From Eutreptiella sp. 'Long Island Sound 2002' (lineage: Eukaryota > Protista > Euglenida): a DNA stretch of 64,000 nucleotides. Where the stretch lies: positions 3,224,001 to 3,288,000 of the forward strand of contig OZ038378.1 of assembly GCA_964036045.1 (NCBI GenBank), read 5' to 3'. The notes beneath the pieces were generated by a model that was not told the origin of the DNA, did no database searches, and worked only from the letters and a program-made list of their open reading frames with translations. The position numbers and the translations under genes were made by a program. Shown piece by piece: positions 1,013 to 45,385 of the stretch. Position 1 is the first letter of the stretch. Each line of letters opens with the position of its first letter.

Positions 1013-1402
1013 CAACCATCGGCACTGGCCAAAAAGTCAGCTAATGTCGGCCAGTCGCGAAAATCCCATTTTGTCAGTTGGCTAGTTCGGCGAGCAAGTT
1101 CATCAACGGAACTTGGGGGAACGGTGGCGAAGCTGTGGAGACATGGGGAAAATGGGACTGGGAAAAATTGGAAATTGGTCCCAATTTGTCCCATTTTTGT
1201 CCGATTTTCCTCCCGTTTCCTACCAATTTCACACATTTTTTATACATTTGCCACAAAATATTTATGGCAATTTCCCAAAAGTCCCCATTTCCCCCCATTT
1301 TCCCCCGCTTCCCCCCATTTTGCCACCATTTCCCATTTTCCCCATTTTCCTTCACCTCTGCGGGTAGTCGGCTAATTTGGCTGCGGCTGACACCGATGCC
1401 TG
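1013..1402 (+). mobile_element. Small TIR element (family D) with internal hairpin and CCCATTTT arrays
   Basis: Imperfect TIR (CAACCATCGG / CCGATGCCTG) and internal inverted repeat AAAATGGGAC...GTCCCATTTT. Organisation matches 22797-23197. Possible degenerate 9-bp TSD accaattgg/aacagttgg (7 of 9 identical). Confidence 0.5.
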
Positions 1403-1469
1403 AACAGTTGGACCCAGCCAGTCAAAAGAAAGAAGAAGAAAGTGCCCTCACCTTCCAATCGTCCGCTTT

Positions 1470-4400
1470 TTGTTTGCAGCCCCTTCATGGTATGAAAATA
1501 GAGCTATGTGGGGCCCATGGAAGCCCCCTTGTGGGTCGTGGACAAATCCTATGGCCTACCCCACGGCCGCACATCCGTGGGTTCAATCCACTGCAGCCCA
1601 CGCAAGCGCCGTCAACAGCGCTTGGGGCTGCAGAAATTGCGCTTCTGTGGAGCACTCGCTTGAACAGTGCCCGCATCCATGGCTTTGCTGGCGTTGCGGC
1701 CAATCGGGGCACACGCATCATGTTTGTCGCACGCCGGACAGTGCACTTCACAATATCTGGAATGGCTACTACACAGGGCATTCCTATCCCAATGGGTCAG
1801 ATTATCCACCAACTCCCAAGGCTCCACCAAACTCAGTGTCCAGGTCCACTCCAATACCCCCCCAATCCCACACAGCGGCCCAGCTCCACGCGTCCACCAC
1901 TCCAATACCCCCCCAATCCCACACAACGGCCCAGCTCCACGCGTCCACCACTCCAATACCCCCCCAGTCCCACACAGCGGCCCAGCTCCACGCGTCCACC
2001 ACTCCAATACCCCCCCAATCCCACACAACGGCCCAGCTCCACGCGTCCACCACTCCAATACCCCCCCAGTCCCACACAGCGGCCCAGCTCCACGCGTCCA
2101 CCACTCCAATACCCCCCCCGTCTCACACAGCCGCCCAGTTCCACGCGTCCACCACTCCAATACCCCCCCCGTCTCACACAGCCGCCCAGTTCCACGCGTC
2201 CACCACTCCAATACCCCCCCAGTCCCACACAGCAGCCCAGCTCCACGCGTCCACCACTCCAATACCCCCCCAGTCCCACACAGCGGCCCAGCTCCACGCG
2301 TCCACCACTCCAATAACCCCAGAAATCAGCCTCGAGAACGAGAGCATCGACGGTATGGAGCACATCAACGACTACTTGCTCCGTGTGGCGCCGAACGGCA
2401 GCGGACGGACTGCACCAGGACACCGCACAATGGGTACCGAGTCCACGCTGCCGCAGGCCCCAAGCCTGGCACGGGCAGTGCCCCATGCTGAGCCACCGGC
2501 CCATTCCCAAGCGTCTTCCACGCCCACAACCCCCAATGGATGGACCATGGCCCCTTCCCAAGCGTCCTCGTCATTGATGCCCACGGCCACTGGGGATGGC
2601 TCACGGCTGCCGCATGGGGCACCCAAAATGGCCCAAAGTGAGCGAAACGAGGACAGCGATGAGCAGCTGCTACAGCACAACGCCCTCCCCAACGCCACAA
2701 TACTATACTACACTGGGCGAGGCGGTGTTGCTGAAAACCGAGATCACGGCAGATGGACCACTGCAGAAGCCCAGAGCAAAGCCCCAACGGCCCCCGCATC
2801 CACGGACGCCCCAAGCGCAGCGCCCCTACCTCCAGCTGCATCGGAGGGGCTAAAGCGCAGTTTGGCGCAGTTGGCAGATTCAGTTAGGAGAGCTGTCGGT
2901 GAGCCAATGGATGAAGGCTGTGTTGGAGAGGAAGGCGCCAGCACGCTGCAAGAGGTACGAAATGATGCATCCACCGCCCTCCTGCTTGCGCACCAGGGCG
3001 CTGGAGGCGAAAACCGGCATGCGATGGGGGAGGGGAGTTTTAGCGCACTCAAAGAGTCCATGGCCCAGCTTGGTTTGATGTATCAGCGTGGGTGTATCAC
3101 CAGGGCGGTGTACAATACTCGTCGGGCTGAGCTGGTGGATGAATACTGCGGGATTCCCCTTGATGCAGACGACGATGAGGCAGGGGCAGCGGGTCCGGTC
3201 CAGCCTGTGGAGGAGACTGCAACATCCGGCACCATTCAGTACGTCTTCGCAGGCAATGCCCCAAGCAAGGAGCTGCAACACAACGCAACAGCAAGAGAGA
3301 AGAAGAAAAAAGAGAAAAAGAGCAAAAGAGGCAAAGAAGCGAAAGGGATGCGAAGAACTGAGGTGATGAGGTCCAGCCCAGCCCCCACGGCCCCATCAGC
3401 CTCCAGCTCCTCGGCGGTGCCCACAGCCCCCGAACATGGCCCGCGGCTGTCGCACGGGGCGCCCACACTCGCCCAGACCGTATCAGAGCAGGGCACCACC
3501 GCCGCAAGCTGCACTGGACCGCCCCCGGAGGCCACGGCGGTGCACGGGTCCCAACTGCCACCGACTGCGGCCAGCGCGAACGCAGCAACGTACCAATGCC
3601 CTTTCGACGAGCGCCACAAGTTGCGCGCAGAGGAGGTGGCGTCACATGTGGCGCAGTGCCGGCCTGTCGACGCCAAGCGCTTCTATTTGTGCCCCTTCGA
3701 CCGGGGGCACCGTATACCGGCCGGTACTGTTCCCGGGCATGTCCGCCGGTGTCCAAGCCGGCCCTCTCTAAAAGCCCCCAGGGCCCCACCACCGAAATCA
3801 GCCTCCAGCTCCTCGTTGGTGCCCACAGCCAACGAACATGCCTCACGGCCGTCGCACGGGGCGCCCACAATCGCCCAGGTCAATCAAGAGCAGGACGGCG
3901 ATGAGAAACCGCCGCACAGCGCCCTTTCCATCGACGCAAGCTGCACTCCGCCGGGCGGTGTCGGCGAAACCCGAGATCGGACTCCTGCCGAGGCCCAGAG
4001 CAGGGCTCTGACGGGCCCAGCCCACGACACCCGAAGCAAAGCCCCAGGGCCTAACGTGTACCAATGCCCTTTCGACGAGCGCCACAAGTTGCGTGCAGAG
4101 GAGGTGGCGTCGCATTTGGAGCATTGCCGGCCGGACCAGTCAAGGCCTGCCACGGCCCTGTATTCTTGCCCCTTCGCCCCCTGGGCGCATCATATGCCCG
4201 CGAGAACGATTCCTGGGCACGTCCTCAGGTGTCCGAACCGCCCACAGGTCCGCAAGCGCCAGCCCCAAGCCACACTGGCTACACTGGCTGCACTGGCAAG
4301 GGCTGGCACTGTGATTGCCGACGATGCCTTTTACAAACAATGTGCAAGCTGCCGCTATTGGAATCTCAAGGTGCGGCCCACCTGCCAGCAGTGTGGGGTT

Positions 4401-6803
4401 GCCCTACCTCACCAGCTATCCGGCCATGCTACTCCAGCTCCGGATGCATCGCCCCTGAAAGCAGCGTCCAGCTCCGCATCGGTGACTCCAGTCACGGAGT
4501 ACCCTCGTTTCCAGGATTTGGACTCTGTTATTGCGGTCAAGAGTGAAGTCGCGGAGTACCCCAGTTCCCATGACCTGGACTCTGATATCGCGGAGTACCC
4601 CCATTTCTATGACCTGGACTCTGATATTAAGGTCAAGAGTGAAGCCGCGGAGTATCCCCATTTCTATGACCTGGACTCTGATATTAAGGTCAAGAGTGAA
4701 GTCGCGGAGTATCCCCATTTCTATGACCTGGACTCTGATATTGAGGTCAAGAGTGAAGTCGCGGAGTATCCCCATTTCTATGACCTGGACTCTGATATTA
4801 AGGTCAAGAGTGAAGTCGCGGAGTATCCCCATTTCTATGACCTGGACTCTGATATTGAGGTCAAGAGTGAAGTCGCGGAGTATCCCCATTTCTATGACCT
4901 GGACTCTGATATTGAGGTCAAGAGTGAAGTCGCGGACTCTCCTTTGCACTCCGCTCGGGACAGCCCGGACTCTCCAGACTTTTTTGCCGATTGGGCCCCC
5001 GATTGGGAAGCGGAGGTGCCTGCTCTGCTGCCCCGCCACACGGCCCACAGTGAGGCAGACGGCAGCCCCCACCGTCACGGGGTGCCGGACGAGGACGACG
5101 AGACGCTTCTGCACGAACTTCAGGGGCAATTGGGTGGCGCCCCACCGGAGAGAGTCCGCGTGCGCACGCGGCGTGCGGCCAAATGCCCCCGGGAGTCGGT
5201 TGCCGGTTCCCTTTCCGGCACGGGTAAGGTTTATTACGCCGGGCTTTGCCGGAACGAGCGGGCGGTGGCATCCGCGAAAGGCCCTCAGGCTCCTGCTGCC
5301 ACTGCACTACACGCTCCCTGGGCCGCGTCCGCTCGCAGCACCGCCGGACCGAGGCCGCGCAAGCGGCCCAGAAATCATGTGCAGGCGACCCCCGCTCAAG
5401 GTCGACACCGCCCACGGACCAATGAGGCCCCGGGCAGTGACAACAGGGTCTCTGCGTCTGGCGGCCCTGCGCCCCAGCCGGCCTCGAGGCACAGTTTGAT
5501 TGTGTCGACGTTCCCGGGCTGCGACCCCAACAGCCACTGCCCGGGCGCCATCGTTGTCGAGCAGGTGGAGCGCGGGAGGGTCACGGGCGCGCTGTACGTG
5601 TTCCGGATGCGGCCCGCCGCAGCGGAAGACGAAGCCGTGCTCCTGCAGCACATCACCGACCTGACGGTCTTCCTGCGGAAGGACTTCATCCGGAAAAGGG
5701 ACATATACCAGCGCCTCACGTTTCAGGAGGCGAAGAAGCATGCACGGGATCCGGCCAAATACCAAGGGCTGTTGGACAAGCTCGAGGCACGAGGCAGCCT
5801 GCAGTCGGAAGGGACTGTGTTCGACTTTCTGGGATTTGTTTGTCGCGTCTATCACCACCCACTCCACCGAGAAACGGTCAAAAGAGTTGAGAGAGTGCTG
5901 CGTGACCTGGATCGCCATCATCGCCCATCACGAGCACGGAGCTCTTGCCTTGAAAATGTTGAAGCCGACGACGATTCCGATCACGCGATTCCTCGGCCCA
6001 AGAAGCGTCGCCGCCTTCCACGCAACGAAGCAGCTAACTCAGATACCACGTCTTCGCCACGGCGACCCGGTTTGGCGGGATCTGAGGACGATGTTGGGGG
6101 CTTGGGCACAGCAAGTCCTCCTGCGGCTGTCACAGAGCGTTGGAGGCCCCAAGTGCCAGACAGTACAAGCCTCGATGGCTGCTATTCTTTTGCAGAGGTC
6201 AAGAGTGAAGTCACGGAGTACAGCTTGGTAGGATCCGAGTACAATTTTGGGGGTTTGAGGCATAGGCCTGACGCTGAAAACATCGCATCGGATGATGATT
6301 CCGATCACACGATTTCTCGGCCCAAGAAGCGCTGCGCCCTTCCATGTGATGAAGAAGCGAACTCAGATACCACGTCTCCGCCACGGCGACCCGGTTTGGC
6401 GGTATCCGAGGACAATGTTGGGGGTGTGAGGCACAGTGACGAGGACGTCGAGGTTGATGTGACCATCTGGATCGATGTCAGTTCCTTGGAGGCTGAGGCT
6501 GAGGATAATGATGTGCCTGAGGATGAGAACGGTGGTGGTGGTGGTGGTGGTGATCATCATCTTCATCATCAGTCTGAAGACCCTGATGCTGAGGGGAACG
6601 TGGAGTATGAGCTTTGCGCTGACCTTGCACGACGGGTTGGGTTGGGTTTACGCCCCACCCCACCCCCTCCGAAGCCCGCACCTGCCCCAGCCCCAAAACC
6701 CCATGCACAAAAGGCTCGTTCCAAAACAGGAAATGTGTTTGTGCCTGTGCCTGTGGATCAAGCTGCTGGGGTGTTGCATTCAGGGTTGGCGGTGGACATG
6801 TAG
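1470..6803 (+). CDS. Large multi-zinc-finger, low-complexity protein: 2x CCHC knuckle, 4x CHHC (zf-U11-48K/GTSF1-like), 1x RanBP2-type finger, tandem repeats
   Basis: 5.3-kb stop-free frame. CX2CX4HX4C at 1629-1670 and 1686-1727. CPF-X3/4-H-X9-H-X3-C at 3597-3659, 3690-3752, 4065-4127 and 4167-4232. C-X2-C-X3-N-X6-C-X2-C at 4341-4394. The track start (TTG 1470) lies in a polypyrimidine/AG acceptor (AG 1478-1479). First in-frame ATG is 1506; alternatively a frame-compatible upstream exon 711-768 ends in GTAAG. Confidence 0.85.
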   Translation: MFAAPSWYENRAMWGPWKPPCGSWTNPMAYPTAAHPWVQSTAAHASAVNSAWGCRNCASVEHSLEQCPHPWLCWRCGQSGHTHHVCRTPDSALHNIWNGYYTGHSYPNGSDYPPTPKAPPNSVSRSTPIPPQSHTAAQLHASTTPIPPQSHTTAQLHASTTPIPPQSHTAAQLHASTTPIPPQSHTTAQLHASTTPIPPQSHTAAQLHASTTPIPPPSHTAAQFHASTTPIPPPSHTAAQFHASTTPIPPQSHTAAQLHASTTPIPPQSHTAAQLHASTTPITPEISLENESIDGMEHINDYLLRVAPNGSGRTAPGHRTMGTESTLPQAPSLARAVPHAEPPAHSQASSTPTTPNGWTMAPSQASSSLMPTATGDGSRLPHGAPKMAQSERNEDSDEQLLQHNALPNATILYYTGRGGVAENRDHGRWTTAEAQSKAPTAPASTDAPSAAPLPPAASEGLKRSLAQLADSVRRAVGEPMDEGCVGEEGASTLQEVRNDASTALLLAHQGAGGENRHAMGEGSFSALKESMAQLGLMYQRGCITRAVYNTRRAELVDEYCGIPLDADDDEAGAAGPVQPVEETATSGTIQYVFAGNAPSKELQHNATAREKKKKEKKSKRGKEAKGMRRTEVMRSSPAPTAPSASSSSAVPTAPEHGPRLSHGAPTLAQTVSEQGTTAASCTGPPPEATAVHGSQLPPTAASANAATYQCPFDERHKLRAEEVASHVAQCRPVDAKRFYLCPFDRGHRIPAGTVPGHVRRCPSRPSLKAPRAPPPKSASSSSLVPTANEHASRPSHGAPTIAQVNQEQDGDEKPPHSALSIDASCTPPGGVGETRDRTPAEAQSRALTGPAHDTRSKAPGPNVYQCPFDERHKLRAEEVASHLEHCRPDQSRPATALYSCPFAPWAHHMPARTIPGHVLRCPNRPQVRKRQPQATLATLAALARAGTVIADDAFYKQCASCRYWNLKVRPTCQQCGVALPHQLSGHATPAPDASPLKAASSSASVTPVTEYPRFQDLDSVIAVKSEVAEYPSSHDLDSDIAEYPHFYDLDSDIKVKSEAAEYPHFYDLDSDIKVKSEVAEYPHFYDLDSDIEVKSEVAEYPHFYDLDSDIKVKSEVAEYPHFYDLDSDIEVKSEVAEYPHFYDLDSDIEVKSEVADSPLHSARDSPDSPDFFADWAPDWEAEVPALLPRHTAHSEADGSPHRHGVPDEDDETLLHELQGQLGGAPPERVRVRTRRAAKCPRESVAGSLSGTGKVYYAGLCRNERAVASAKGPQAPAATALHAPWAASARSTAGPRPRKRPRNHVQATPAQGRHRPRTNEAPGSDNRVSASGGPAPQPASRHSLIVSTFPGCDPNSHCPGAIVVEQVERGRVTGALYVFRMRPAAAEDEAVLLQHITDLTVFLRKDFIRKRDIYQRLTFQEAKKHARDPAKYQGLLDKLEARGSLQSEGTVFDFLGFVCRVYHHPLHRETVKRVERVLRDLDRHHRPSRARSSCLENVEADDDSDHAIPRPKKRRRLPRNEAANSDTTSSPRRPGLAGSEDDVGGLGTASPPAAVTERWRPQVPDSTSLDGCYSFAEVKSEVTEYSLVGSEYNFGGLRHRPDAENIASDDDSDHTISRPKKRCALPCDEEANSDTTSPPRRPGLAVSEDNVGGVRHSDEDVEVDVTIWIDVSSLEAEAEDNDVPEDENGGGGGGGDHHLHHQSEDPDAEGNVEYELCADLARRVGLGLRPTPPPPKPAPAPAPKPHAQKARSKTGNVFVPVPVDQAAGVLHSGLAVDM
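1845..2315 (+). repeat. 51-bp coding minisatellite, 9 units plus a partial unit (TTPIPPQSHTAAQLHAS)
   Basis: Read directly from the sequence and the translation. Confidence 0.95.
4494..4935 (+). repeat. 57-bp coding minisatellite, 6 near-perfect plus 2 degenerate units (AEYPHFYDLDSDI[K/E]VKSEV)
   Basis: Read directly from the sequence and the translation. Confidence 0.95.
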
Positions 6804-9800
6804 TCTATGGTGAGCGTTTTGGTTGAGCACCCCTCAGCACTGGCTTGAACTCACTTGGGCGGTGGCAATCCGGCGTCTGCATCGTGTTGGGTGTCCGCCT
6901 GCATTCGTTTGTGAGCACCAACGGATGATGGCCCTGAAACACAATTCCGCATCCCACTTTCCCGCCATATGCCGCATGACGTCTGGGACCTTCCATGAAG
7001 TTTACTGCAGCTGTTTCAGAACACAAAGGTCTGTGGCACCTTCATGTTCAAGGGTATCGAGTCCCTTGTCAGGGAACCCAGCTGGACGAGGGGTGGTGAC
7101 CCTGTCTTCGAGGGGTGGGATTTAACGACAGTGGCAAAACACCAAGGGGAGATCCGTGAAAAACTGCGGACCCTTTTTTTTAGCAGGTATGACGGCGAAG
7201 CTTGGGGCGAAAACTTGGATTTTTTGAGGAGGCTCGAGTATTTGGACGGGAGCCCCGTGAAAATTTACCGCTACGAAGCTGACACACAAGCCCCCCCCCC
7301 CCACCCAGTACATTACATGTCCCATTCCACGCTGTGCTGGTGTCTGTGGGCCATATCTTGAGCCTTACGCTCGTATATCATGGACGCGGGCCTGAATGCA
7401 GTGCGGTAATGCACCTTTCGGCCCGTCTGCCACAGGCAGGGGGCTGTATGTGGATGCATCTTGATTTGAGGGTCCGTTCCTGTCCACTGTACATTTCAGA
7501 GCACTCATGTCCTCTCCTGCACACGTTTGTGCAAGGCAAGCACTCCCCTGGGGAGCTGGTAATTGCACATGGTCCTGTGCCCCAGCACATTAGCTACATA
7601 TTTTCGGACATCTCGAAATTTTAATTCCGGTATTTGGGATGCCATCTTGTCTCCGTTGCATAACTGCAAGAGTCACCGAGCCTCCTTTAGCTCAGGTCGC
7701 ATCAAACTCTTGTTGAAACTGACGGTACCCAAGTACCGGCCCCAACTGCGTTTCATACTGCCCGTAACCGCGCCCCAACCGCTTTTACAGTCCCCTGTAA
7801 ACACTCTCGAGCTATTTACGAATTGCTCCCAATGCTCCCAAAGCCCCTCCCCTTCAAGCAAATCCCTCGGGAGGGGGTCAGGGCAGACACAATGGTGTGC
7901 TACAATTTGGCCTCACATTTCTGGCCTCTTCAGGCAATTCAATGTTTTCCCTCAGTGACGACGTGGGTAGGTTGGCCGAGACCATGAGGGTTCCCCATCA
8001 GCCCCCCAACAACGGGGATGCCGCAAGCGGGCGTCTGCTTGGTGCGTTGTACCCAAGAGGCACTCACCTCATGGCATTCTCCCCACAGCACCTGATTCCG
8101 GGCGAGGATACCACACAACCCGGCTAGGATGGGCCAGGGGTCCATTGCAACTCTGGGGAGGGGGGCCTTTCGAGCTAGCGTGAGATAGAGGGGGTGGCGC
8201 GGGGCTTCGGGTTGTTGAGAAATTTCCCAGTGCCCTGTGGGGATTCTGTCACCGCTGGATGTGGAAACAACTACAGGGTTTCTTGCGCCAAGAGAAATAC
8301 CAACCACATAGTGTCCCAGCCAGACGCATCATCCAGGGACTGACTGAGCTGCTTTCTCGCCGTCAGTGGGTACCGTACCCTCCAAAGATGCTCGGATAGC
8401 CCTCTTGTATTTGATTGGTAAAGGAAAATCATTACACCTGCCCGCTACTACATGGCGCCCGAGTTGCGCTGTTTCTCGCCCTGTTGTAGCACGGTACCAA
8501 TTACGCCTTGCGGCGCGTGCCTTTTTCTCTTTTCTTCGTATATTAACCAGTGAATTGACTGGCTGCTTTCAGCACCATAACATACACAGCATCGCAGCAT
8601 GGTACGAATGGCTGGATACTTGGTCTTGTGACCACATAGCAGAAGCTGGTTGTAAGGACCAATTTCACAATGTGGGTCCAAAACTGGTTGTACAGCATTT
8701 AAAGGACAACACCGAGTGGCTCAAAGGCACACGTAAATGGAGGGCAGCACATCTGTGCTGGTCCATCCATGAAATAGACAAGAGTATGGATCGGGCTGGG
8801 AAAGCCACCGATTACATTTTTTCTGTTGTTACACATACTGATTTGGTGAAGCTCATCGAATTTTCCTTGGTTTGCCATAATTATTGTTACCTGCAGGAAA
8901 GGTTTGGTAGCACCTGTTTGCTATTCCTATGGGAGGCTCATTCAGCGCACAGTCCGCTGACCTCTATTGCATTTGGTCATTTCACTTGCAAAAGGTAAAG
9001 TAAATATGCCTCTTTTCATGTGACACATGTCGGTGTGCATCATGAGTGGTGTGCAGATTGGAACACCGACTGGCTGGTGTTACAGAGCATTGCCACCCTC
9101 CTACCGTCCGGTGGGAGGTGAGGGGAGGGGCGGCCTGTCTGTTTTGTCTCCACCTATATGTATGTGCTACTTACGATCAAGATGTTGCCCTCTCCCTCCC
9201 GCAAAAATGGTCACCTGCACTATCTTCCCACAGACCTTTTGCGAAAAGTGCCTGGGCCGTTTTTCGGCTCTTGACAAGCTTTTTCTCCCTCTTGTGTCTC
9301 TCATGTCTGGCCTATTGTGCTGATCCTGCTTCAACCAACAAACACGTGACGGCTCACACGTCACCATGCGGGGGGGGGGGGGGGGGGCTCGAAAGGCCAG
9401 ACTTTATTTTCTTTCCTTGAAATTGGCTCAGAACAGATTTTTGGGCAAAAAATATGTGTGAACCAGATTTGCCTAAATTTTGTGTTCCATTGTTTTATTG
9501 AACAGTTTTAGACGTCCCGCAATGCTTTTGGTAGGCTCAGCCGTTGGAGCCGAATTAGGTGGGGGGGAGGTCTCTGAAATAGGCTTTAAGGGCCCCCCTC
9601 CCCAGAGTTGCGATGGACTGCGGGCCATGTGACAACCACGCAACCGACAGGACCAGTTTTGTTTGCCTGCATCAGAACTGTGTATTGCGCCGCATCGCTT
9701 GGCGGTGTGATTTGTGCCCCCGCTGTTATGGTGCCCGGGAAAGGGCGCTGCGCTGCGATGGTACTAGGCGCCGTCAGCAATCGCGTGGACCTAAGGCGAT

Positions 9801-16809: not shown

Positions 16810-18556
16810 CCTCATTACGGGGATGGGTGAGGCAGTGCTCAGACTTGAGTGTGGAGAGGAGGGTCTGGATACGCTGTGCAGTGTGTTGACAAAAGTTGGG
16901 GAGGGGGACTTAGACGAGGAGGACGATGGGTACTACAGTAGTAGTGACGAGGAGGGGATGGTTACCGAGGAAATGGCTGCTCGGGGGGTGGGGGAAGCGG
17001 GGTGTGTGACAGTGTCGGATAAGATCTGGAACAGCCTGGTCCCTCGTGACTCTATGGGGGTGTACCGGAGGTAGTTGAGGGAGGACAGTGCGGGGGTTGA
17101 AAAGTCACAGGGGGGGAGACCGGGGCCTGTGGATGCAATGCTGGAATCCCTCAGAACTGAGACTAAGGGACTGCGCAGAACAAAGCGACCCGAGACGGCC
17201 AAAATGTTCCTTACCTGGAAGAATGCACTAAAATGCCGAGCCATTCTTGATGCGCGGGGAGTCAACGCAAGCGACCCCCGGAAGCCCCCAAAGTTCAGAC
17301 TCCCTGGGCTGGAGGCCATCCGCCACTGGATGGGACGTGCGCGCCCTCGGCGTGTGGGGGGAGGCAGGTGCCGTGTTTTTTTGGCTAAACTGGACCTGCA
17401 GAATGCTTACTGGAGCATCCGCCTCCCCACCGCATGGCGCACTGTTTTTGTGGTGGGGGGGCGGTCGGGTAAGCGTTTTCGATATGCAAGGCTGCCTTTC
17501 GGATGGGCCTATAGCCCTGTGATATTTCAGAAGCTGGTATCCTCTGTTATCCGGGGGGCCTTGTCGCGACGTGGTGTGCGGGGTTGGGTGTATCTGGACG
17601 ACATTTTACTGTCGTGCAGGAGCAAGAGTCGGCTGAGGGGGGCTGTGAGGGACTGCATTCGAAGGCTGAGACGTGCGGGTTTTATTGTGGGGGCCAAGTC
17701 CGAGCCGGAACCAACTGAGCGCCTCGGTTTTATTGGTAAGCAAATTGACACCAAAGCTGGGACGATCAGCAATGCGGTGGGTGCCTTGGTCGGTGCTTTC
17801 AGGGCGTGGGTCAGGGGGGTGGGCAGGGGGCGCCTGCCCTCAAAGGTTATGGAACGCCTCCTGGGTAAACTGTGCTGGCTGAGCAGGCGCAGTGCGGGTC
17901 TGGGCGCCTTCCTGGCGGGCGCATATCGAGGTTTGCAGAGTGGGAAAGGGGTGTTTGGGAGGGGTGTCTGCAAAGGGGTGGCGACAGTGCTCCTGTTTTC
18001 TTGTGTCCCTCAGCGGTGTGACCCTCCAGGGCCTGGTGGATGAGGGGCCTGGGAGGTGTTCGTGGATGCGGCTCCAGAGGGCAAAGTTTTTCGACTGGGA
18101 ATTGTTGGGGGGGGGGATTACTGTCGATCGGAGGTGTGTCCGCCCTGGGTGGACTCCCTGCAGCAGGCGGAGCTGTATGCGCTGTACATCGTTATTAAGG
18201 TGGCATCCTATCGTGGTTTTGAAAGAATTCGTGTGGGTTCAGACAGCAACGTAGCTAGGTCTCAGATTAATGCGCCGCGGGCGTCGGTGCATGCCGATTC
18301 TCAGCAACGAATACTCTGGCGCCTGTTTTGGCTCAGGTGCTGGAGTACTGTTAGTGTCGAGTCCTTCAGGGTGCCGTCTTTTTTAAACGCGGCCGACCCC
18401 CTGAGCAGGGAGACAGGCTTCTAGTCACGGAAACAGGCCATTGCCGAAGCAGCAAGGCGTCGTGAGATGTGGGAAAGAGCCGTCGACACGAAGTACATGG
18501 GTCTGATGGAGATGATTCGCCCCCCGTGGAGATTCAAGGGGGAGGTGGGGGACTGA
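16685..18556 (+). CDS. Reverse transcriptase plus DIRS-type RNase H; single frame with three in-frame stops
   Basis: RT motifs LDLQNAYW, LPFGWAYSP, YLDD (17591). RNase H motifs FVDAA, AELYA, SDS, NAADPLSR. Stops TAG 17072, TGA 18041 and TAG 18422 all lie in one frame. Confidence 0.9.
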
Positions 18557-18962: not shown

Positions 18963-20096
18963 ATACTCACCCGCGCCACGTCGGATCCCCGTTGGTTCGG
19001 GGCGCGCAAGGGCCTCGCACCCGCGTTCGCGACCCTCAACATCAACCGCCAGGTCGCCCACATGCACCACAAGCTGGGCGTGCTTTGTGCGAAGCTCGAG
19101 GACCACGCACGCGCCCAAGCCCCTGTGGATGTCACGCAGATGATGGTCATGTTCACGTTGGATTTCATTGGCCAGAGCGCATTCAATTACGACTTGCGTG
19201 CCTTGGAAGACACCCACAGAAGCGAGGGAGCGAGGCTATTTGCCGATGTGCAAACCGTTTTCACGGAGTTCGTGTTGAAGCAGGGCGCCAATCCAATCCG
19301 GCCGTGGCTTTTCTGGCTTCCCGAGATCAGGGCCGCAAAACAGGCATCGAAACGGCTGCAAGCCTTGGCCCTTCAAGTCATGAGCCGCTACCGTGCGACC
19401 CACTCTGAAGAGGACATCCGGACCGGGCAGTCCATCTTGGCCCATATATTACGGAACCCTGTCTACCCTAGTGATGAAGCCCGGGTGCACGACGTCCTCA
19501 CTTTGATCGTCGCGGGGTACGACACCACTGGCTTCACGGTGTCATGGATTTTGTACGACCTTAGTCGCACCCCAAAGGTCATGCAGCAGCTGCAATCCGA
19601 GTTGGATGCTGCGTTCCCAGACCCTTCCGTCGATCCCTCTCCCTCCGAATTATCCCAGCGGCGTGTCCTCAACAACTGCATCAAGGAGAGCATGCGGCTG
19701 TGGCCGGTCGCCGCTCTTGGAGTGGGGCGGGTCAACAGCAAGGACGTGCATGCCCAAGGGTTTATTATCCCCAAAGGGTCCCAGATAATGACACCGTTCT
19801 ACGCCATCCACCGCATGCCGTGCATTCCGGACGCCGACGCATACCGCCCCGAGCGCTGGGACGAGCCGGACTCGGCCCTCACGGCCCGGTACATGCCCTT
19901 CTCACAAGGGCGGCGTAACTGCGTGGGGCAGAACCTGGCGAACCTTGAGATCCGGGTGGTGCTGGCGCGGCTCATGCGGCGTTTTGCTTTTGAGGTCGTC
20001 CAGGAACCGGCAATCGACTTCCGTGGGGTCACTATGAAGCTGCGGGACTTGTTGCTGCGGGTCAGTAACCGACTTGGGGGTCAGACCAAAGGGTAG
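18963..20096 (+). pseudogene. Cytochrome P450, 3' part (377 aa, no stops)
   Basis: ILTRATSDPRWFGARKGLAPAF (C-helix WxxxR), AGYDTT (I-helix), ESMR (ExxR), PERW, FSQGRRNCVG (heme Cys). Confidence 0.95.
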
Positions 20097-27404: not shown

Positions 27405-28691
27405 ATGCTGGGCCGTTTTGTTGCAATCCTGCTTGAACCTGTCAGCGATGATGATGGCAGGCCATCATTCCTCAATCGGGCACTCGCCCTCAACTCGAAC
27501 TTGCCTGTCGGCTGCGAAAAGTTGCAAATGGCGGACAGGTCCCTCATGCACATGCGCACACATGATCGATTTGATGTCTGGATTGCAAGCAGCACAAGGG
27601 ACTCCAGAAGCCTATCTCCGCCCCCAACGTATAAGCTTCTGCGGCTTATGACGCCTGGGGCAGAAGTTGACAAGGTGGTGTTCCACGAGCCACACGTGCG
27701 GGATAACCAATGCGCTGTGCAGGTTCACAATGACCTAATCAACGGGCTGTTGGGGTCTATTGGCCTGAACTCTGATGAAGTCCATCTCCTCCCGGGGACA
27801 GACCCACGGAACTCAAAACTGTTCTTCACGGAGTTGAATGAGGAACAGGTGAATACTGTGGTATCACAGTTCGGATCCAAGCCAAGGTTCCAGATCCAGC
27901 CAGTGGAATGGCATCGTGGTGCCAACGTGACCAACATGACTGCTGTCTATGAGGTGTGGATCAAGAAGACGCACAAGGAAACATGGTCTCCCATGCTGTA
28001 TGCCTCAGTTCTCGCGATGTTTTGGACAATCCCGGGCGTTCTGCAGGCACAATCGCCAGTGAAAATCCACGTGCTGGGGCCCAGCAAACTGCTGCTGGGT
28101 CTCACGGAAACTGGGCACTCACTGTTGAAGACAAGGTATCGTGAACTGGTGGCTGCTATCGGGGCTGTCTTCAAGGACCTGAGGACAAGACAATTCCTCG
28201 ATAGGGATATCATCTCCAAGCCCACAATCCCCTCGACATGGAAGAAAGACCTTGTGGGCACAGTGTACATTCTGGATGTGGCACCGTGGTGGTACCTCTC
28301 AGACCTGACTGAGGCCCTTGGTCCCTCAGTGCACTGCCGGTACATCGCGGACCGCGTCAGATGGAGTGTTGGGGAGATGCGCACTGCCACATGGCGATTG
28401 ACCGGGGAAAGTGTGACACAGCTGATTGGAAAGGTCTACCTGTCAGATTTTGGGATGCCTCCGATGTTTGTGATCTCCGAGGCAGATTACGAGGCGCGGA
28501 AAAGGCGAATCACAGATCGGCACAGAAACACAGACGACTCGAAGACACGCAGGCAAGGCCTAATCACGGCGGGAGAAATGGCCAAGGCCATGGAGTTGGA
28601 TGACCAAGTCGACAAGGTCATCAGCTCCCTCAAACGCAAGCGGGACTTGAAGGAAGATGAGGCTTCGTTGTCCAATGGAGCAACACGATGA
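27405..28691 (+). CDS. LINE ORF1 (likely start ATG 27528)
   Basis: Stop-free frame directly upstream of ORF2, with a stop/start overlap ATGA at 28688-28691. No domain recognised. Confidence 0.85.
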   Translation: MLGRFVAILLEPVSDDDGRPSFLNRALALNSNLPVGCEKLQMADRSLMHMRTHDRFDVWIASSTRDSRSLSPPPTYKLLRLMTPGAEVDKVVFHEPHVRDNQCAVQVHNDLINGLLGSIGLNSDEVHLLPGTDPRNSKLFFTELNEEQVNTVVSQFGSKPRFQIQPVEWHRGANVTNMTAVYEVWIKKTHKETWSPMLYASVLAMFWTIPGVLQAQSPVKIHVLGPSKLLLGLTETGHSLLKTRYRELVAAIGAVFKDLRTRQFLDRDIISKPTIPSTWKKDLVGTVYILDVAPWWYLSDLTEALGPSVHCRYIADRVRWSVGEMRTATWRLTGESVTQLIGKVYLSDFGMPPMFVISEADYEARKRRITDRHRNTDDSKTRRQGLITAGEMAKAMELDDQVDKVISSLKRKRDLKEDEASLSNGATR

Positions 28692-31600
28692 TGTCAGCAT
28701 CAAGCATCCCTCTGAGCAGCACGCTCAGAGTATTGTCCCAAAATATCAATGGGTTTCAAACAAAAATAACCATGAGAAAGCGTAAGCAGAAGCGCATAGT
28801 GGCCCTAGGGTCACTGCTGCGGTCCCTGGAGGTGGACTTCTTCGCCATCCAAGAACCTCACTTCGTCACGGTGGAGGATCGTCAAGCGGGCATGCAGTGC
28901 TTGTCAAAGTACGGGTATGGCCTGGACAGACCACTTCATGAAGAAGGAAGGGGAGGAGTGGCACTGGCGTGGAAAACATCCAAGTGGACACTGCAATCAA
29001 TGAAGTTCTTGTCTCCCAGGGCGTTGAAAGCCTCGCTGTCGAGTGGTCCGCTGGAGATCACCATAGTTGTGGTCCACTTCCACCACAAGCACACGCGTCG
29101 ACAGTCACAATGGAAAGACATCGCCAAGGAGTTACATGGACCAAACCTGATTTTATGTGCTGATCACAATAGTTTAGTTGTAAAACACAGGGACGCCTTT
29201 GCGCCCCCAGAGTTTGAGCATGACACGTCTTTACGTGCCAGAGACCAGGAGGTAACGACCTTGGCGAAAGCGGGTCTGCAGGATGTTTGGGTGGATATTC
29301 ACTGTCCAGCCCTGACGGACATCAAGGACAAGGAAGCATCGTGTCCGACGGGCTTCACATACGGCTACCCCCGAGAAGGAGAGCGACTCGACCCGCAGAG
29401 GCTACGCCATATTGACCGCATCCACACAACATCCGAATTGCTGAGCCTGGCGACGAGCGTATACCCCATGTTTGCTGCCAACTCAGACCACAAGGCGATC
29501 CTGGCTGAATTCACACCCCCGTCTTTCGACACAGAGGACACGGTCCCCAGATTCTACTGCCCAGAGACCATCCTTCACGACCCGGAGGCAATGGAAGATC
29601 TGGAGACATCTCTCAAGTCTGTCAAGTCAACAGGGGATCAATGGTGGGAAGAGGCGCCGAGCTGCATCCAAAAGAAGGCGATCAACCATCAAAGGGAGCA
29701 TAAAAACAAAAAGCAGTCGGTAGAGCTACAAGCCTTGCGGTTCCTGCGTGGCTCCACGAGAGACTCTGTCGCACTAGCGGTCTACCAATTTCTATTATCA
29801 CTCGGGATCGCAGCAGCAGATGCAGCAACAACCTACACCCTCCTGGTGGGTGTGTATGAAAAGGCTCAGCGTGACACAACGGGCATGGAAACACTGTCCA
29901 AGCTCAAGGGGGTGATCACGACCGGGGAAACCTCAGGAGATCCGAGAGCGCAAAGAAACGAATTGTATCGGTTAATGCGGGAGTTGCAGGAGCGAAAGAA
30001 ACTTCAACAGCTGGTATCCAGGACAGGCTCGGCGATACGGGGGGCAAAGGCGGTGGCAAAAGAGCTGGTGGACCATTGGGACAAAGTGTCCACCCCGACG
30101 GGATCCACCGAAGAAGATTGTGTAGCTTATCTGAAGTCGTTAGGAGTGGAACAGCGGCTGCGCAAGGCAGGTCGACTTCTTTTCAAGCAACTATCCCTGG
30201 ACATAGTTCATGAAGGCCTTAAGAGGCTGAACAGCAAAAGTTCCCCTGGATTGGATGGTTTCTCGGCAAAATTCTTCAAGAGGTTCTCGGACATCTTCGA
30301 ACCGCAAATGTATGACTCAATTAAACGTTTCCTCGAAGTGGGCAAAATGCCGGAGACATGGACCTCGGGAGTGGTGACAATGATCCCCAAGACGAAGGCG
30401 ATGCAAACACCAGATTCGCTCCGACCAATTGCACTGCAAACTACAAGGCAGAAGTGGCTCACCAACCCCCTCCTGATCCAGTTAGAGGATGTACTCCTCC
30501 ACTGTATCCCGTCACAGCAAACAGGTTTCCTTCGACACAGAAGCATACTCCAGCATGTCTATGGGTCACGGGCACTCTGGGATGGCCTAAGTGAAGGAGC
30601 GGCGTTATCAGTAGACTTCAGAAATGCTTTCCCCACGATGTCTCACGAGATGGTGTCGGCAGCTCTGGGTCTAATGTGCATACCATTCTTGTATATCCGT
30701 CTGATTCTACACCTCTTGCGAGCTCCGTATCTATACTCCGTTGGAAAAGGATACGTCCCAGGTGTATACCACCACCCGAGGGCAGGCACACGCCAGGGGG
30801 ATCCACTCTCCCCGGCGCTGTTCTCCCTGGTGGCATCCTTCGTGATTTTCCCACTACAAGACCTGGGTCCAGTACTGACTGTCATGATGTATGCAGACGA
30901 CCTCATCAATTTCTTTGATGGAAGAGCCAACCCACAGCTGTTGAAAAGAGTATGGGAAGTGGTTTCACGTTTTGGACAATTTTCGGGGTTGAAGGTCAAC
31001 CTGAACAAAACAGCAGCGATAGTTCGCAACTGTGGGGGAATGGAGTGGGCGAGGTGCTTTCGGGACATTGGAGTGGATGTCAAAAACTTCGTCAAGTATC
31101 TGGGTGTACGCTTGGGGAATATTGGGCACCAACAAGACGACCAAGGATGGGGGTTGACGATAGAGCAGGCCTTTGCACCAGCACTGCAAGAGGCCTTCCG
31201 TCGCGCAAGGGTTGTATCCACGCTGCAACTGTCCATGAACGAACGTGCATTCATGCTGACATCATGGATTCTGCCGGTCGTGGCATGGGTATCCAAGGCA
31301 TATTACGCCCCAATCTCGGTGATCAGACAACTGAAGTTGGTGTATCACGCGACTATGGGTACCAATAGCTGGGGAATCACCCTACCAATCCTCTCACGAC
31401 CAAGAACGCAAGGGGGACTGGCGCTACCAGAACCAGAACTGTTTCTTATGCACCAGGCAGCGGCTCCGTTCGTCAGCCTGTTGGGAGAGCCTCACAAATT
31501 CCCTGACAAGGCAGTGGAGACCTTCTATGCATGGGCAACAGCCATAGGGTTCACACCGTCCAAGGACAACCTTCCATATATTCAACTGGGCATGGTCCGA

Positions 31601-33532
31601 ACGGCAGATCTCACATTTCTGGGATGGTCGGCGAAGGCACACTCCAACATTCAGCGAGTGGCCCCGCAGGTGGCCCCCCCGGCAAACCGGGACCGCCTGC
31701 CCTTGTGGCACTCTGTGTATTTCCGAAATGAGTTCCGCTGCTCCTACTACAACACGAAATTGATCCGGCAGGGGGTGCTGACGTGGGGTCAATTCCAAAG
31801 CTTGGAGGACGCAAGATTGTTCAATGCACTGCCTCGGACATGGAAAGGGGTCTACAATCACGGCGGACGACTCCTCAACAAAGTCCTGTCACAAGGGGGG
31901 TTCGATACCCCCGCAGTCCATACCCAAAACTGGACCAGGGCATGGCTGCTCCAGTTCTACGCCTCTCAGCCAGGGGTCCGCGACCCGCAAACACCGGAGG
32001 TATGGGAACAGCTGGCACAGGCACAGCTACCACCGAGGGCTCAAGACTTTGCGCGAAAGGCGCTGTGGCACAAACTGACCGTACATGCAAGAGTCTACAA
32101 GAGGTCAGGCACTGACAAGTGCCCGGTGTGCTCACAAAAGGAGACGGTCAAACACGCGATGGTCGAATGCCCCATGTTCAAAGCAGCGGCGGCGGTTGTA
32201 CAGCATTACTATGGCCAAGTGACAACTGATAACGGGCTATCCACAGTTCGAGATATGATGGAGTCCGACGACGAAGAATGGTTGCTGAAAACGAACCAAG
32301 GCTGGGCGATGTGGTCAGCAAGAAGTGCCCACTGGTGATATCAATGCGAAGTCAAGGCAGGAGCGTCGCCGGTGTTCGCGTCATACCTTACAACATGGCT
32401 AAGGGAGCTATGTGAGTGGGTGGGATTTTACACAGGGGAGCGCAGGGAACAATGGAAAGGCTTTTAAAAATCACTGGAACAACTTCGAGACACCGGAGTG
32501 CAGCCACGACAAGGGGAAGTGCAAGTACATGGGGGACTGAATGCATGGTGGCAAACACACACGGAATGCTCCACCCAAGAAAAATCAGCCGACAATCATA
32601 GTTGGCAAAGGGCAACGGAGTCACGCCCGAAGCGCCCGAGGCAAGCAGGCCCGGGAGTGCTACAAGGAGTGCAAGAACTGATTGCAGAACTGGTGGAGAA
32701 GGGCTACAGGATAGTGTACACTTGTGGATCGTCGAAGCGACTGAGCCACAAGGACATGCGAAGGGCCGGGGGATTTGGCGTGTTCGCAGCGGAAGACGAC
32801 CAAGGACCAGAGGTGCGCTTCTGTGGCTACGTACCAACGCATTACAGGCAAACAAACAACGGAGCAGAGCTTTGGGCAGCCGTGGAAGCCTTACAGGGAT
32901 TCTGGGTGCCAAAACTGGCAATCCTCACCGACTCGCAATACCTGCAGCTGGGAGCGACTGGCAGGGCCCAACACTGGAAGTCAAAGGGATGGACAACCAC
33001 ATCTGGAAAACTGCAAGTCCACGTCCCAGTCTGGGAAATGCTGCTCCAGGAAATGGCGACGCCGGGAAGAGAAGTCAGGTGGGAACATGTCTCAGCACAT
33101 GTCAACGTGCAGGGAAATGAGATGGCGAATGGATTGGCCATGGAAGGCATGTGTTCAAGCCCACTGTGGTCACAGCATGTTGCACCAAAATCATCATCTG
33201 GGTCAGAGTCCACGGTAGGTTTGAGGGGAGGGTCGGGATCAGAGTCTGAGGGCACAAGGGCACTCTGGTCATCCCTGGGTATGGTACCCATGGACAGTGA
33301 TGAACTGACAGGGGAAGCATCCGGGGAGCCAGCGCCACATGAGATGGGACCGTACTCCTCAAGCAATACAGAAAGTGAGGAAATGAGGACAGGACACACA
33401 CACCAGGGAATGCTGTCGAGTGCAATGTCAGCAGCAGACACACTGTCCTTCAGCACTGATGTGATTGACACCAGGCGACAGCGCAAGAAGCGAAGGCTCA
33501 GGAAACGCAGGAACCCAGGACAGGGTCGATAA
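28688..33532 (+). CDS. LINE ORF2: AP endonuclease - RT - zinc finger - RNase H1 (L1/Tx1-like), with two in-frame stops
   Basis: APE: QNING, IQEPH, DHNS, IDRI, SDH. RT: SPGLDG, LRPIAL, QQTGF, DFRNAF, RQGDPLSP, YADD (30890), KYLG. Zinc finger CPVC...H...C (32120-32170). RNase H: TNNGAEL, TDSQY, VSAH, GNEMA. TGA 32336 and TAA 32465 separate the two track ORFs, which share one frame. Confidence 0.92.
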
Positions 33533-45186: not shown

Positions 45187-45385
45187 ACCCCGGGTCCCTA
45201 CCCACGCTATGCCCGGACGCCGGGGACCGGTTGCACCACCCAAGTTTCCTTATTTTCCCCCAGCTTTCCCCATTTCCCCCCATTTTCCCCCCATTTTCCC
45301 CCATTTTCCCCCATTTTTCCTTGCCATGGGTACATTGTGGGTACGTTTGTGGGTAGAGTACCCGCCACCGGAGCCGGGTACTTCT
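45187..45385 (+). mobile_element. Short foldback element with (CCCCATTTTC)n core
   Basis: Near-perfect inverted pair CGGGTCCCTACCCAC / GTGGGTAGAGTACCCG flanks a CCCCATTTT array resembling family D. Confidence 0.45.

Follow-up and report, generated by a model that had tools for sequence, protein, structure and literature searches.

A long Eutreptiella open reading frame combining two GTSF1-type CHHC finger pairs with further zinc modules

The Open Reading Frame and Its Features

The window, that is, the whole 64-kb stretch of Eutreptiella DNA that was analysed, contains a long uninterrupted reading frame that encodes zinc modules, repeat arrays and duplicated units. The features discussed below are all on the + strand:

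1458 to 1479, +, polypyrimidine tract ending in CAG, its end coinciding with the opening of the reading frame (sequence reading)
1470 to 6803, +, uninterrupted open reading frame (ORF) of 1,777 codons, with the stop at 6801-6803
1629 to 1670, +, CCHC zinc knuckle 1 (CRNCASVEHSLEQC), pattern C-X2-C-X4-H-X4-C
1686 to 1727, +, CCHC zinc knuckle 2 (CWRCGQSGHTHHVC), canonical form, by pattern
1846 to 2320, +, tandem repeat of a 51-bp unit (9.3 copies, 95% identity), each unit coding for the 17 residues TPIPPQSHTAAQLHAST
2555 to 2652, +, leader unit copy 0 (S-rich ... SRLPHGAPKMAQ), family D4, with no fingers after it
3048 to 3335, +, helical stretch with weak resemblance to the DMAP1-binding domain (PF06464)
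3294 to 3356, +, Lys/Arg-rich patch (REKKKKEKKSKRGKEAKGMRR), putatively NLS-like by motif count
3395 to 3492, +, leader unit copy 1, family D4, ahead of CHHC pair 1
3597 to 3659, +, CHHC finger 1 of pair 1 (PF05253, pattern, AF2 model, Foldseek)
3690 to 3752, +, CHHC finger 2 of pair 1, after a 10-residue linker (pattern, PF05253, AF2, Foldseek)
3797 to 3894, +, leader unit copy 2, family D4, ahead of CHHC pair 2
4065 to 4127, +, CHHC finger 1 of pair 2, its DNA 93% identical to finger 1 of pair 1 (family D8)
4167 to 4232, +, CHHC finger 2 of pair 2, X6 variant, after a 13-residue linker
4341 to 4394, +, four-Cys zinc ribbon with RanBP2/NZF spacing, C-X2-C-X3-N-X6-C-X2-C (pattern)
4495 to 4936, +, tandem array of a 57-bp unit (about 6 copies at 97%, and further degenerate ones) that encodes AEYPHFYDLDSDI(K/E)VKSEV
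4977 to 5018, +, acidic Trp/Phe motif DFFADWAPDWEAEV (motif count)
5480 to 5930, +, folded-looking segment, predicted as three strands followed by four helices (codon statistics)
5951 to 6100, +, C-terminal duplicated unit copy 1 (D6, 84% identity)
5991 to 6023, +, PRPKKRRRLPR, putative classical monopartite NLS (motif)
6275 to 6424, +, C-terminal duplicated unit copy 2 (D6)

The first in-frame ATG lies at 1506 and gives a protein of 1,765 aa, with out-of-frame ATGs ahead of it at 1487 and 1492. The tract at 1458-1479 may be a cis- or spliced-leader acceptor, so that neither the start codon nor the true 5' end of the gene is certain. P0001 (1,457 aa), a mechanical gene call in public data, is shorter and covers 2430-6803. 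The other reading frames close often across the ORF, and codon statistics give frame 1 over 2322-5957 a usage similar to that of the P450 gene in the window. This bias is absent from the N-terminal 125 codons, which include the CCHC part, and from the last 280 codons; the CCHC part may or may not be translated as one with the remaining ORF.

The CHHC Finger Pairs and Their Likeness to GTSF1

The original prediction of four CHHC fingers in two tandem pairs is borne out by the pattern, C-X5-H-X9-H-X3-C being exact in three of the four while finger 2 of pair 2 has X6. Numbered from ATG 1506, pair 1 spans residues about 698-749 and pair 2 about 854-909. On the whole protein, Pfam PF05253 (zf-U11-48K) scores 59.1 bits (E 3.6e-16), and each pair is matched in two stretches above the cut-off of 21.1 bits (48.1 for pair 1, 31.4 for pair 2); at E<=1, other Pfam families yielded only two sub-threshold hits. 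As a control for chance, the CHHC, CCHC and RanBP2 patterns were run over all six frames of the window. Elsewhere there were only two loose CHHC matches, both lacking the Cys-Pro start of real CHHC fingers, and the CCHC and RanBP2-pattern matches of the ORF were the only ones. None of the seven zinc modules has lost a zinc ligand.

Both sequence and fold identify the pairs as GTSF1-type, in agreement with the original prediction. Indeed, mouse GTSF1 (PDB 6x46) matches by sequence across both fingers of pair 1 (E 1.8e-7). In an alignment of 48 sequences with GTSF1-like proteins, no variation is seen at any of the eight zinc ligands or at the Pro that follows the first Cys. For pair 1, AF2 gives a confident model (pLDDT 87.1) of two beta-beta-alpha fingers (E-E-H each). 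In Foldseek, this model ranks GTSF1 6x46 first (prob 1.00), followed by 9nhc_E, the GTSF1 chain of the SIWI-piRNA-target-GTSF1 complex, and its single fingers superpose on U11-48K with an rmsd of 1.8-2.3 A. An orthologue of TRM13 or U11-48K is excluded by domain content, as the methyltransferase domain is absent and the fingers stand in tandem pairs rather than singly.

The features in common with the GTSF1/Asterix family, to which Paramecium Gtsf1 also belongs, comprise tandem CHHC fingers, CP-x4-H-x9-H-x3-C spacing with ligands and Cys-Pro kept, and short linkers whose lengths, together with the pairing, fit GTSF1 and not the single-finger families. As in GTSF1, an acidic, aromatic and disordered region follows the fingers. 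The overall design differs, since GTSF1 proteins are below 20 kDa with a single N-terminal finger pair (PMC9539491), whereas the present one is 1,765 aa long, carries two pairs in its central part and has additional zinc modules. The residues for RNA and PIWI binding may differ as well. In finger 1 of mouse GTSF1, RNA is bound by the basic residues R26, R29, K36 and K39 (PMC9385479); in the alignment only the R26 position is basic (one of four), with Glu at R29 and Gln or His at K36; the finger contains further basic residues (R, K, R) close to these positions. A PIWI-binding motif of the GTSF1 W98/W107/W112 type is not recognisable: there is no Trp within 40-50 residues after pair 1, and the sole Trp after pair 2 within that reach sits inside the zinc ribbon. 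The motif DFFADWAPDWEAEV and seven YPHFYD repeats are found some 120-260 residues past pair 2 and are not alignable to GTSF1; a docking role for DFFADWAPDWEAEV would be speculation.

The CCHC Knuckles and the Zinc Ribbon

Two CCHC knuckles had also been predicted. The exact pattern supports them, while the PF00098 profile covers both in two stretches at E 0.0028 and 18.1 bits, under its cut-off of 20.8. Among solved structures, retroviral nucleocapsid chains match them by sequence at E 0.015-0.06. The arrangement of two C-X2-C-X4-H-X4-C knuckles five residues apart resembles the pairs of retroelement nucleocapsids and CNBP, and knuckle 2 has the canonical aromatic and Gly-His positions of such knuckles. 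Unlike a retroelement nucleocapsid, the pair scores below the Pfam cut-off and has no capsid, protease or reverse transcriptase (RT) context.

The ribbon at 4341-4394 was originally read as a RanBP2-type finger. Its spacing is identical to that of RanBP2/NZF fingers, including the conserved Asn, and this spacing is what the assignment amounts to, as PF00641 (RanBP2) gave no match even at E<=10. Its best PDB matches are the HOIL-1L NZF/RanBP-type fingers (2crc/3b08), at a non-significant E of 0.17-0.57, and the ESM Atlas returned generic zinc ribbons for this part alone, with scores of 0.81 or less. The leading Trp of W-x-C-x2-C-x3-N-x6-C-x2-C, which lies two residues before the first Cys in RanBP2/NZF fingers, is absent, while the Cys and Asn spacing is kept. 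Further, the Thr-Phe pair with which NZF fingers bind ubiquitin is Arg-Tyr here, and the aromatic residue after the Asn that serves ZRANB2-type RNA binders is Leu.

Repeats and Other Segments

The remainder of the protein includes repeat arrays. The 17-mer encoded at 1846-2320 is rich in Pro, Thr and His, and this stretch is open in other frames too; the array at 4495-4936 carries seven VKSE motifs in an acidic-aromatic 19-mer unit. At 3048-3335, PF06464 remained sub-threshold (E 0.016-0.017, 16.4-16.5 bits vs a cut-off of 27), so that a DMAP1-binding domain is unconfirmed and is retained as a weak lead only.

The segment at 5480-5930 had been described as globular-looking. It has the most gene-like composition in the ORF, with a codon-position GC of 0.66/0.45/0.73 vs 0.61/0.42/0.75 in the P450 gene, and it belongs to no family found. 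Its single-sequence AF2 model (pLDDT 39) was unusable and was kept out of the fold searches. For this segment and the C-terminal third, no relatives were found in short-protein or mid-size protein searches, ESM Atlas features, Pfam, NCBIfam, PHROGs or JGI contigs. A diverged copy of 5476-5614 occurs elsewhere in the genome.

Relatives and Novelty of the Domain Combination

Homologue searches covered protein sets of 5.8 billion and 1.8 billion. No full-length relative was found, and a word-indexed search with residues 1-1765 gave only the window's own gene call; the JGI contigs held no close copy or transcript of the finger region. The closest non-self match is a CHHC U11-48K-type protein of Eutreptiella gymnastica, UniRef100_A0A7S4CV87 (P0002, 592 aa; E 3.8e-11), to which single pairs of the ORF are 28-33% identical. 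It likewise has several GTSF1-type pairs separated by low-complexity linkers, but only three pairs, and lacks the CCHC knuckles, zinc ribbon, repeat arrays and C-terminal segment. MMETSP transcript data include this six-finger paralogue. Its C-terminal part forms an ORF of its own, separate from the N-terminal half, in the single locus retrieved. The genome that carries the ORF is very likely that of Eutreptiella gymnastica; a protein encoded in the same ENA assembly matches part of a protein from this species at 100% identity.

The original prediction spoke of an undescribed architecture. The whole combination is indeed unmatched among the relatives found: of the 20 longer CHHC matches, none has CCHC or RanBP2 domains, and literature searches on the combination of CHHC, CCHC and RanBP2, and on an Eutreptiella Argonaute, found nothing relevant. 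Multiple CHHC pairs are already known, since proteins with four and six CHHC fingers exist, including the six-finger one expressed in Eutreptiella. Judged from these sequence comparisons, only the wider domain combination appears unprecedented, and not the presence of several CHHC pairs in one protein. With the whole protein as query, the ESM Atlas gave scores of at most 0.62 to unrelated TRAF/XAF1-type zinc fingers, which were treated as noise.

Copy Number, Expression and Constraint

The non-repeat parts of the ORF are tiled by unique contigs that are 100% identical to it and have a depth of about 35x, as expected of a single-copy sequence, and the flanks are repetitive (1200-1396 and beyond about 7019). 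Neither LTR nor TIR flanks were found, Pfam detected no RT, protease, integrase or transposase domain in the protein, and there is no second copy within the window. Single-copy depth, together with the absence of terminal repeats and transposon domains, indicates a host gene rather than a transposon-carried one.

Two estuary metatranscriptomes contain fragments that match the ORF at 100% identity, which is weak evidence of its expression. These fragments are short, of depth 2.4-5, absent over 1397-2184, and also cover 6844-7086 downstream of the stop; carried-over DNA may account for them. No transcript-derived protein or contig of the gene was found in the size ranges searched, and culture-transcriptome data gave no trace of it.

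Constraint was estimated by comparing duplicates within the ORF. The dN/dS is 0.17 between the second fingers of the two pairs, 0.33 between their first fingers and 0.41 between the C-terminal duplicates. In the leader units, pN (0.21) exceeds pS (0.06), as in fast-evolving or unconstrained sequence. The finger values point to constraint, which would be long-standing given a dN/dS well below 1 at a dS of about 1.3 for finger 2.

Proposed Function and Alternative Explanations

Taken together, the ORF is probably a real, single-copy nuclear gene restricted to the Eutreptiella lineage, encoding a large and mostly disordered protein that was built through repeated internal duplication and would act as a multivalent zinc-module RNA scaffold. 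In the layout of this protein, the two GTSF1-type modules are central, the CCHC knuckles lie near the N-terminus and the zinc ribbon comes just after pair 2, the rest consisting of repeat arrays, NLS-like basic patches and the one segment of folded appearance. The basic patches would direct the protein to the nucleus, the zinc modules may bind structured or single-stranded RNA, and partner proteins, plausibly one of the Argonaute/PIWI clade or another enzyme of a small-RNA pathway, would be recruited to this RNA, as is the case with GTSF1. We infer the scaffold role for Argonaute/PIWI from likeness, and a role in silencing would be pure analogy. Outside animals, GTSF1 partners PIWI in ciliates as well (PMC11602119, PMC11724296); Piwi proteins are reported from Diplonema, as are key determinants of RNAi from Euglena gracilis (PMC10161547).

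It is also possible, if somewhat doubtful, that the protein is functional but independent of Argonaute/PIWI, its zinc modules serving general nuclear RNA metabolism, such as tRNA, snRNA or spliced-leader handling or RNA chaperoning. CHHC fingers are also found in U11-48K and TRM13, both binders of structured RNAs, and mouse GTSF1 itself binds tRNA (PMC9539491). Nematode GTSF-1 is rewired to RRF-3 (PMC13650160). That the PIWI-binding Trp motif of GTSF1 is not conserved here, nor three of its four basic residues for RNA binding, points the same way. The tandem pairs, however, with their 10- and 13-residue linkers, match GTSF1 and not the single-finger families, and GTSF1 proteins come out on top in both sequence and fold comparisons.

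It is unlikely that the ORF is a young or decaying mosaic, put together from parts such as GTSF1-like pairs and a gag-like knuckle pair through segmental duplication and exon capture, with little or no expression and no maintained function as a whole. Such an origin would be consistent with the orphan status of the ORF, its very recent tandem expansions (95-97% identity), the excess of pN over pS in the leader units, the weak coding signal at both ends, the lack of a culture-transcriptome trace and the diverged fragment of 5476-5614 elsewhere in the genome. Against it stand 1,777 codons free of stops and frameshifts while the other frames close often, the low dN/dS of the fingers at the finger 2 dS noted above, the intact zinc ligands of all seven modules and the identical fragments in two metatranscriptomes.

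Within the favoured reading of a nuclear RNA scaffold, the most far-reaching version would be a one-protein counterpart of the axis formed by Asterix, Panoramix and a SUMO ligase, activities that are separate in animals, evolved independently in Discoba. The two GTSF1 modules would then engage target-bound Argonaute/PIWI and RNA, and the acidic-aromatic array with its SUMO-acceptor (VKSE) motifs, possibly with the ubiquitin/NZF-like ribbon, would recruit chromatin-silencing machinery. We regard this version as very unlikely.

GTSF1 is an essential PIWI cofactor in animals and has lately been shown to act with PIWI in ciliates too; to our knowledge, nothing is known of it in Euglenozoa. The ORF and the six-finger Eutreptiella protein show that euglenids multiplied the GTSF1 module and embedded it in much larger proteins. 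If the present protein is expressed and binds Argonaute/PIWI, it would open a way into transposon control in a lineage whose genomes are very repeat-rich, and nature would have supplied a test case of multivalent GTSF1 function. Without expression, the ORF would be a lineage-specific mosaic, informative mainly on the assembly of new genes by duplication.

The surroundings are rich in mobile elements, as originally predicted: the window includes LINE ORFs and further RT ORFs, with YR (tyrosine-recombinase) retroelement and MITE copies nearby. The companion suggestion of a transposon-borne decoy or anti-silencing protein, and with it a virus-borne or gag-like one, could appeal to this setting and to the nucleocapsid-like knuckle pair, but it is highly improbable in view of the single-copy depth across the unique parts of the ORF, the missing terminal repeats, transposon domains and second copy in the window, and the absence of any other CCHC knuckle in any frame of the window, which indicates that the local elements are not its source. 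Rfam gave no matches on the window. An upstream (CCCCCATTTT)n was considered as a common promoter or element and rejected; the other copy, at 45268-45318, has the simple repeat alone in common with it.

Zinc-binding modules

Regular-expression scans of the translation of the open reading frame (ORF) at 1470-6803 reproduce exactly the motif coordinates of the original prediction, and the modules are located as follows.

Zinc modules of ORF 1470-6803
1629-1670 and 1686-1727, plus strand: CCHC knuckles, pattern C-X2-C-X4-H-X4-C
3597-3659 and 3690-3752, plus strand: CHHC fingers of pair 1, pattern C-X5-H-X9-H-X3-C
4065-4127 and 4167-4232, plus strand: CHHC fingers of pair 2, same pattern in the first, X6 in the last
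4341-4394, plus strand: four-Cys ribbon, pattern C-X2-C-X3-N-X6-C-X2-C

Both finger pairs are GTSF1-type tandem CHHC modules, as had been proposed. The whole protein matches Pfam zf-U11-48K with an E-value of 3.6e-16. Scanned separately, the pairs each match in two stretches, with 48.1 bits for pair 1 and 31.4 bits for pair 2, above the gathering score of 21.1. In a search of solved structures, mouse GTSF1 (6x46) aligns to pair 1 across both fingers (E 1.8e-7), and an alignment of both pairs with GTSF1-like proteins from an exhaustive search (46 sequences, whole or in segments) shows no variation at any of the eight zinc ligands or at the Pro that follows the first Cys. AlphaFold2 on the GTSF1-like alignment yields two beta-beta-alpha fingers (pLDDT 87.1). 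The top Foldseek match of this model in the PDB is GTSF1 6x46 (E 6e-4, prob 1.00), followed by GTSF1 as bound in the SIWI-piRNA-target-GTSF1-Maelstrom complex; individual fingers can be superposed on U11-48K to about 2 A. Across six frames of the 64-kb window, the CCHC and RanBP2 patterns have no matches beyond those in the ORF, and a loose CHHC pattern has just two elsewhere, both lacking the Cys-Pro start; the finger cluster is thus not a chance product of composition.

The two CCHC knuckles are probably genuine: both fit the pattern exactly, the second in canonical form, and nucleocapsid chains among solved structures match them at E 0.015-0.06, although their Pfam score of 18.1 bits lies under the cut-off of 20.8. 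The proposed RanBP2 finger has the expected Cys/Asn spacing, but it has no match to PF00641 even at E<=10, and its best PDB matches, the HOIL-1L NZF/RanBP-type fingers, are in register at E 0.17-0.57 only. It is a putative four-Cys zinc ribbon with RanBP2/NZF spacing, an assignment that goes no finer.

Relatives and architecture

An exhaustive HMMER search of the finger region against 1.84 billion representatives returned 59 matches: the gene itself, a Eutreptiella protein with six fingers (E 3.8e-11) and, after these, mostly proteins of GTSF1 size (75-200 aa, about 30-40% identity) from animals and elsewhere. The closest non-self relative is this six-finger protein, P0002 of Eutreptiella gymnastica (592 aa; UniRef A0A7S4CV87; MMETSP transcript), whose CHHC fingers form three GTSF1-type pairs with a GGLDMF motif ahead of each, and whose C-terminal 285 residues are encoded at 100% identity on another ERZ25074135 contig. 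On this ground E. gymnastica, a euglenid of marine and estuarine waters, or a near-identical strain is very likely the source of the window, in agreement with the estuarine runs in which the sequence occurs. At that locus (L003 6001-6858, ENA ERZ25074135 ctg10975; P0002/P0060/P0061), the C-terminal 285-307 codons form an ORF separate from the N-terminal half.

A Pfam scan of 20 of the longer matches found four or six CHHC fingers in several, among them Eutreptiella and Ixodes proteins and two without a name; in one match CHHC occurs together with TRAF-type and 3CxxC fingers, and another is a vertebrate gene model including a reverse-transcriptase (RVT_1) stretch. Two tandem pairs therefore have precedent, and what holds of the architecture originally thought undescribed is the combination: CCHC knuckles or a RanBP2 finger occur in none of the 20, a literature search found nothing combining CHHC, CCHC and RanBP2, and CHHC, CCHC and ribbon in a 1,765-aa context have no counterpart among the data searched. 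The protein is a lineage-specific variant architecture around a known module.

Repeats and constraint

Most of the protein is of low complexity and made of internal duplications.

Internal repeats of ORF 1470-6803
1846-2320, plus strand: 51-bp repeat, 9.3 copies, 17-aa Pro/Thr/His unit
2555-2652, 3395-3492 and 3797-3894, plus strand: Ser-rich leader unit, three copies, the second and third each ahead of a finger pair
4495-4936, plus strand: 57-bp array encoding AEYPHFYDLDSDI(K/E)VKSEV
5951-6100 and 6275-6424, plus strand: 150-bp C-terminal duplicate

Seven of the eight VKSE motifs lie within the 57-bp array, and the eighth, in a dispersed copy at 6186-6221 (FAEVKSEVTEY) 1.3 kb downstream, keeps the core of the 19-aa repeat, a hint that the motif, not the array, is the conserved element. 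Shuffled sequence contains a mean of 0.55 VKSE motifs, but tandem-array copies are non-independent events.

Codon-by-codon comparison of the internal duplicates, in small samples, gives dN/dS 0.17 (dS about 1.3) for finger 2 and 0.33 for finger 1 (93% DNA identity) between the pairs, and 0.41 for the C-terminal duplicate; in the leader units, pN (0.21) exceeds pS (0.06). Constrained fingers sit within fast-changing linkers. The history is a mosaic one, in which duplication or homogenisation came later for finger 1 and the leader than for finger 2.

The segment at 5480-5930 is the most gene-like of the ORF in codon-position GC (0.66/0.45/0.73, against 0.61/0.42/0.75 in the window's P450 gene) and correlates best with that gene in frame-1 codon usage. 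Protein, contig and family searches detected no relative or family for it, and its single-sequence model is unusable (pLDDT 39). A helical stretch of the protein bears a weak likeness to the DMAP1-binding domain (E 0.017, below cut-off). A 903-bp contig of depth 15 from a genomic run is about 89% identical to 5476-5614 and, after a 370-bp skip, resumes at 5985; half of the ten differences listed fall at third codon positions, and the contig appears to be a diverged, incomplete copy from elsewhere in the genome.

Gene status and expression

ORF 1470-6803 is very likely a real gene, and its GTSF1-type modules genuine. It runs for 1,777 codons without a stop on the plus strand, and its first in-frame ATG, at 1506, gives 1,765 aa. 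The sole database protein matching it, P0001, is a mechanical call on the same DNA, within a 138-kb contig of ENA assembly ERZ25074135; it has 1,457 aa and begins at an internal ATG. The ORF opening coincides exactly with a polypyrimidine-CAG tract at 1458-1479, a possible acceptor; two ATGs upstream of 1506 are out of frame, and codons 1-125 are without frame-1 bias. Support for joint translation of knuckles and fingers therefore comes down to the open frame that they have in common and to the preserved knuckle motifs. Because several frames of the 51-bp repeat are open, on both strands, frame continuity across it is weak evidence by itself; overlapping mechanical ORFs of 233-412 aa result there and are unlikely to be genes.

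Overlapping mechanical ORFs over the 51-bp repeat
1078-2316, plus strand
1667-2491, plus strand
1612-2561, minus strand: several ORFs

Expression is possible. Two estuary metatranscriptomes contain short contigs (depth 2.4-5) that match scattered parts of 2235-7086 at 100% identity; they have no splice-like joints, extend past the stop over 6844-7086 and leave 1397-2184 uncovered, and may be DNA carry-over. Searches over the size ranges covered turned up neither a protein nor a contig derived from a transcript of this gene, and the gene is absent from JGI contigs, although the paralogue's MMETSP transcript is present there.

Possible mechanism

In GTSF1, finger 1 binds RNA via R26, R29, K36 and K39, the central Trp residues W98, W107 and W112 bind PIWI, and faster target cleavage needs both activities (PMC9385479; PMC9539491). 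Paramecium Gtsf1 is likewise a partner of PIWI proteins (PMC11602119, PMC11724296), whereas nematode GTSF-1 binds an RdRP instead (PMC13650160). Piwi and Argonaute proteins are reported from Diplonema, and key RNAi determinants from Euglena gracilis (PMC10161547). In the ORF protein, by contrast with GTSF1, just one of the four RNA-binding positions, that of R26, is basic in the solved-structure alignment, other basic residues lying within the finger, and no Trp motif occurs at the corresponding position after the fingers, downstream of which come acidic-aromatic repeats and a DFFADWAPDWEAEV motif.

NLS-like basic runs, including KKKKEKKSKRGK, KRPR and PRPKKRRRLPR, suggest a nuclear protein. 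The reading we moderately favour, all of whose functional steps we infer, is a multivalent RNA-binding scaffold in the nucleus, with GTSF1-type modules that would dock on RNA and/or on a small-RNA enzyme, of the Argonaute family or another. A role in small-RNA-guided silencing is a more doubtful proposal.

Copy number and genomic setting

A housekeeping TRM13 or U11-48K orthologue was rejected. The original prediction also allowed for a decoy carried by a transposable element. Sequence around the ORF is repeated (depth about 15,700 at 1200-1396, and likewise repeated past about 7019). The unique parts of the ORF are tiled at 100% identity by contigs of species-labelled runs at about 35x, a single-copy depth, no LTR or TIR brackets it, the window holds no second copy and the protein has no transposon domains; on these grounds a mobile-element gene was rejected. 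ORF 1470-6803 belongs to the host and is single-copy.

A simple repeat of (CCCCCATTTT)n type is dispersed, with copies at 1283-1350 and 45268-45318, the repeat alone being common to the two; the first, upstream of the ORF, reaches about 15,700 depth in a genomic run and appears in many different contexts, including metatranscriptome contigs. Elsewhere, the window contains the following.

Other features of the window
27405-32338, plus strand: LINE-like element, a 428-aa ORF followed by an ORF with endonuclease, RT and zf-RVT domains
17075-18043, plus strand: second RT fragment
19062-20096, plus strand: cytochrome P450 ORF, 344 aa, intron-free
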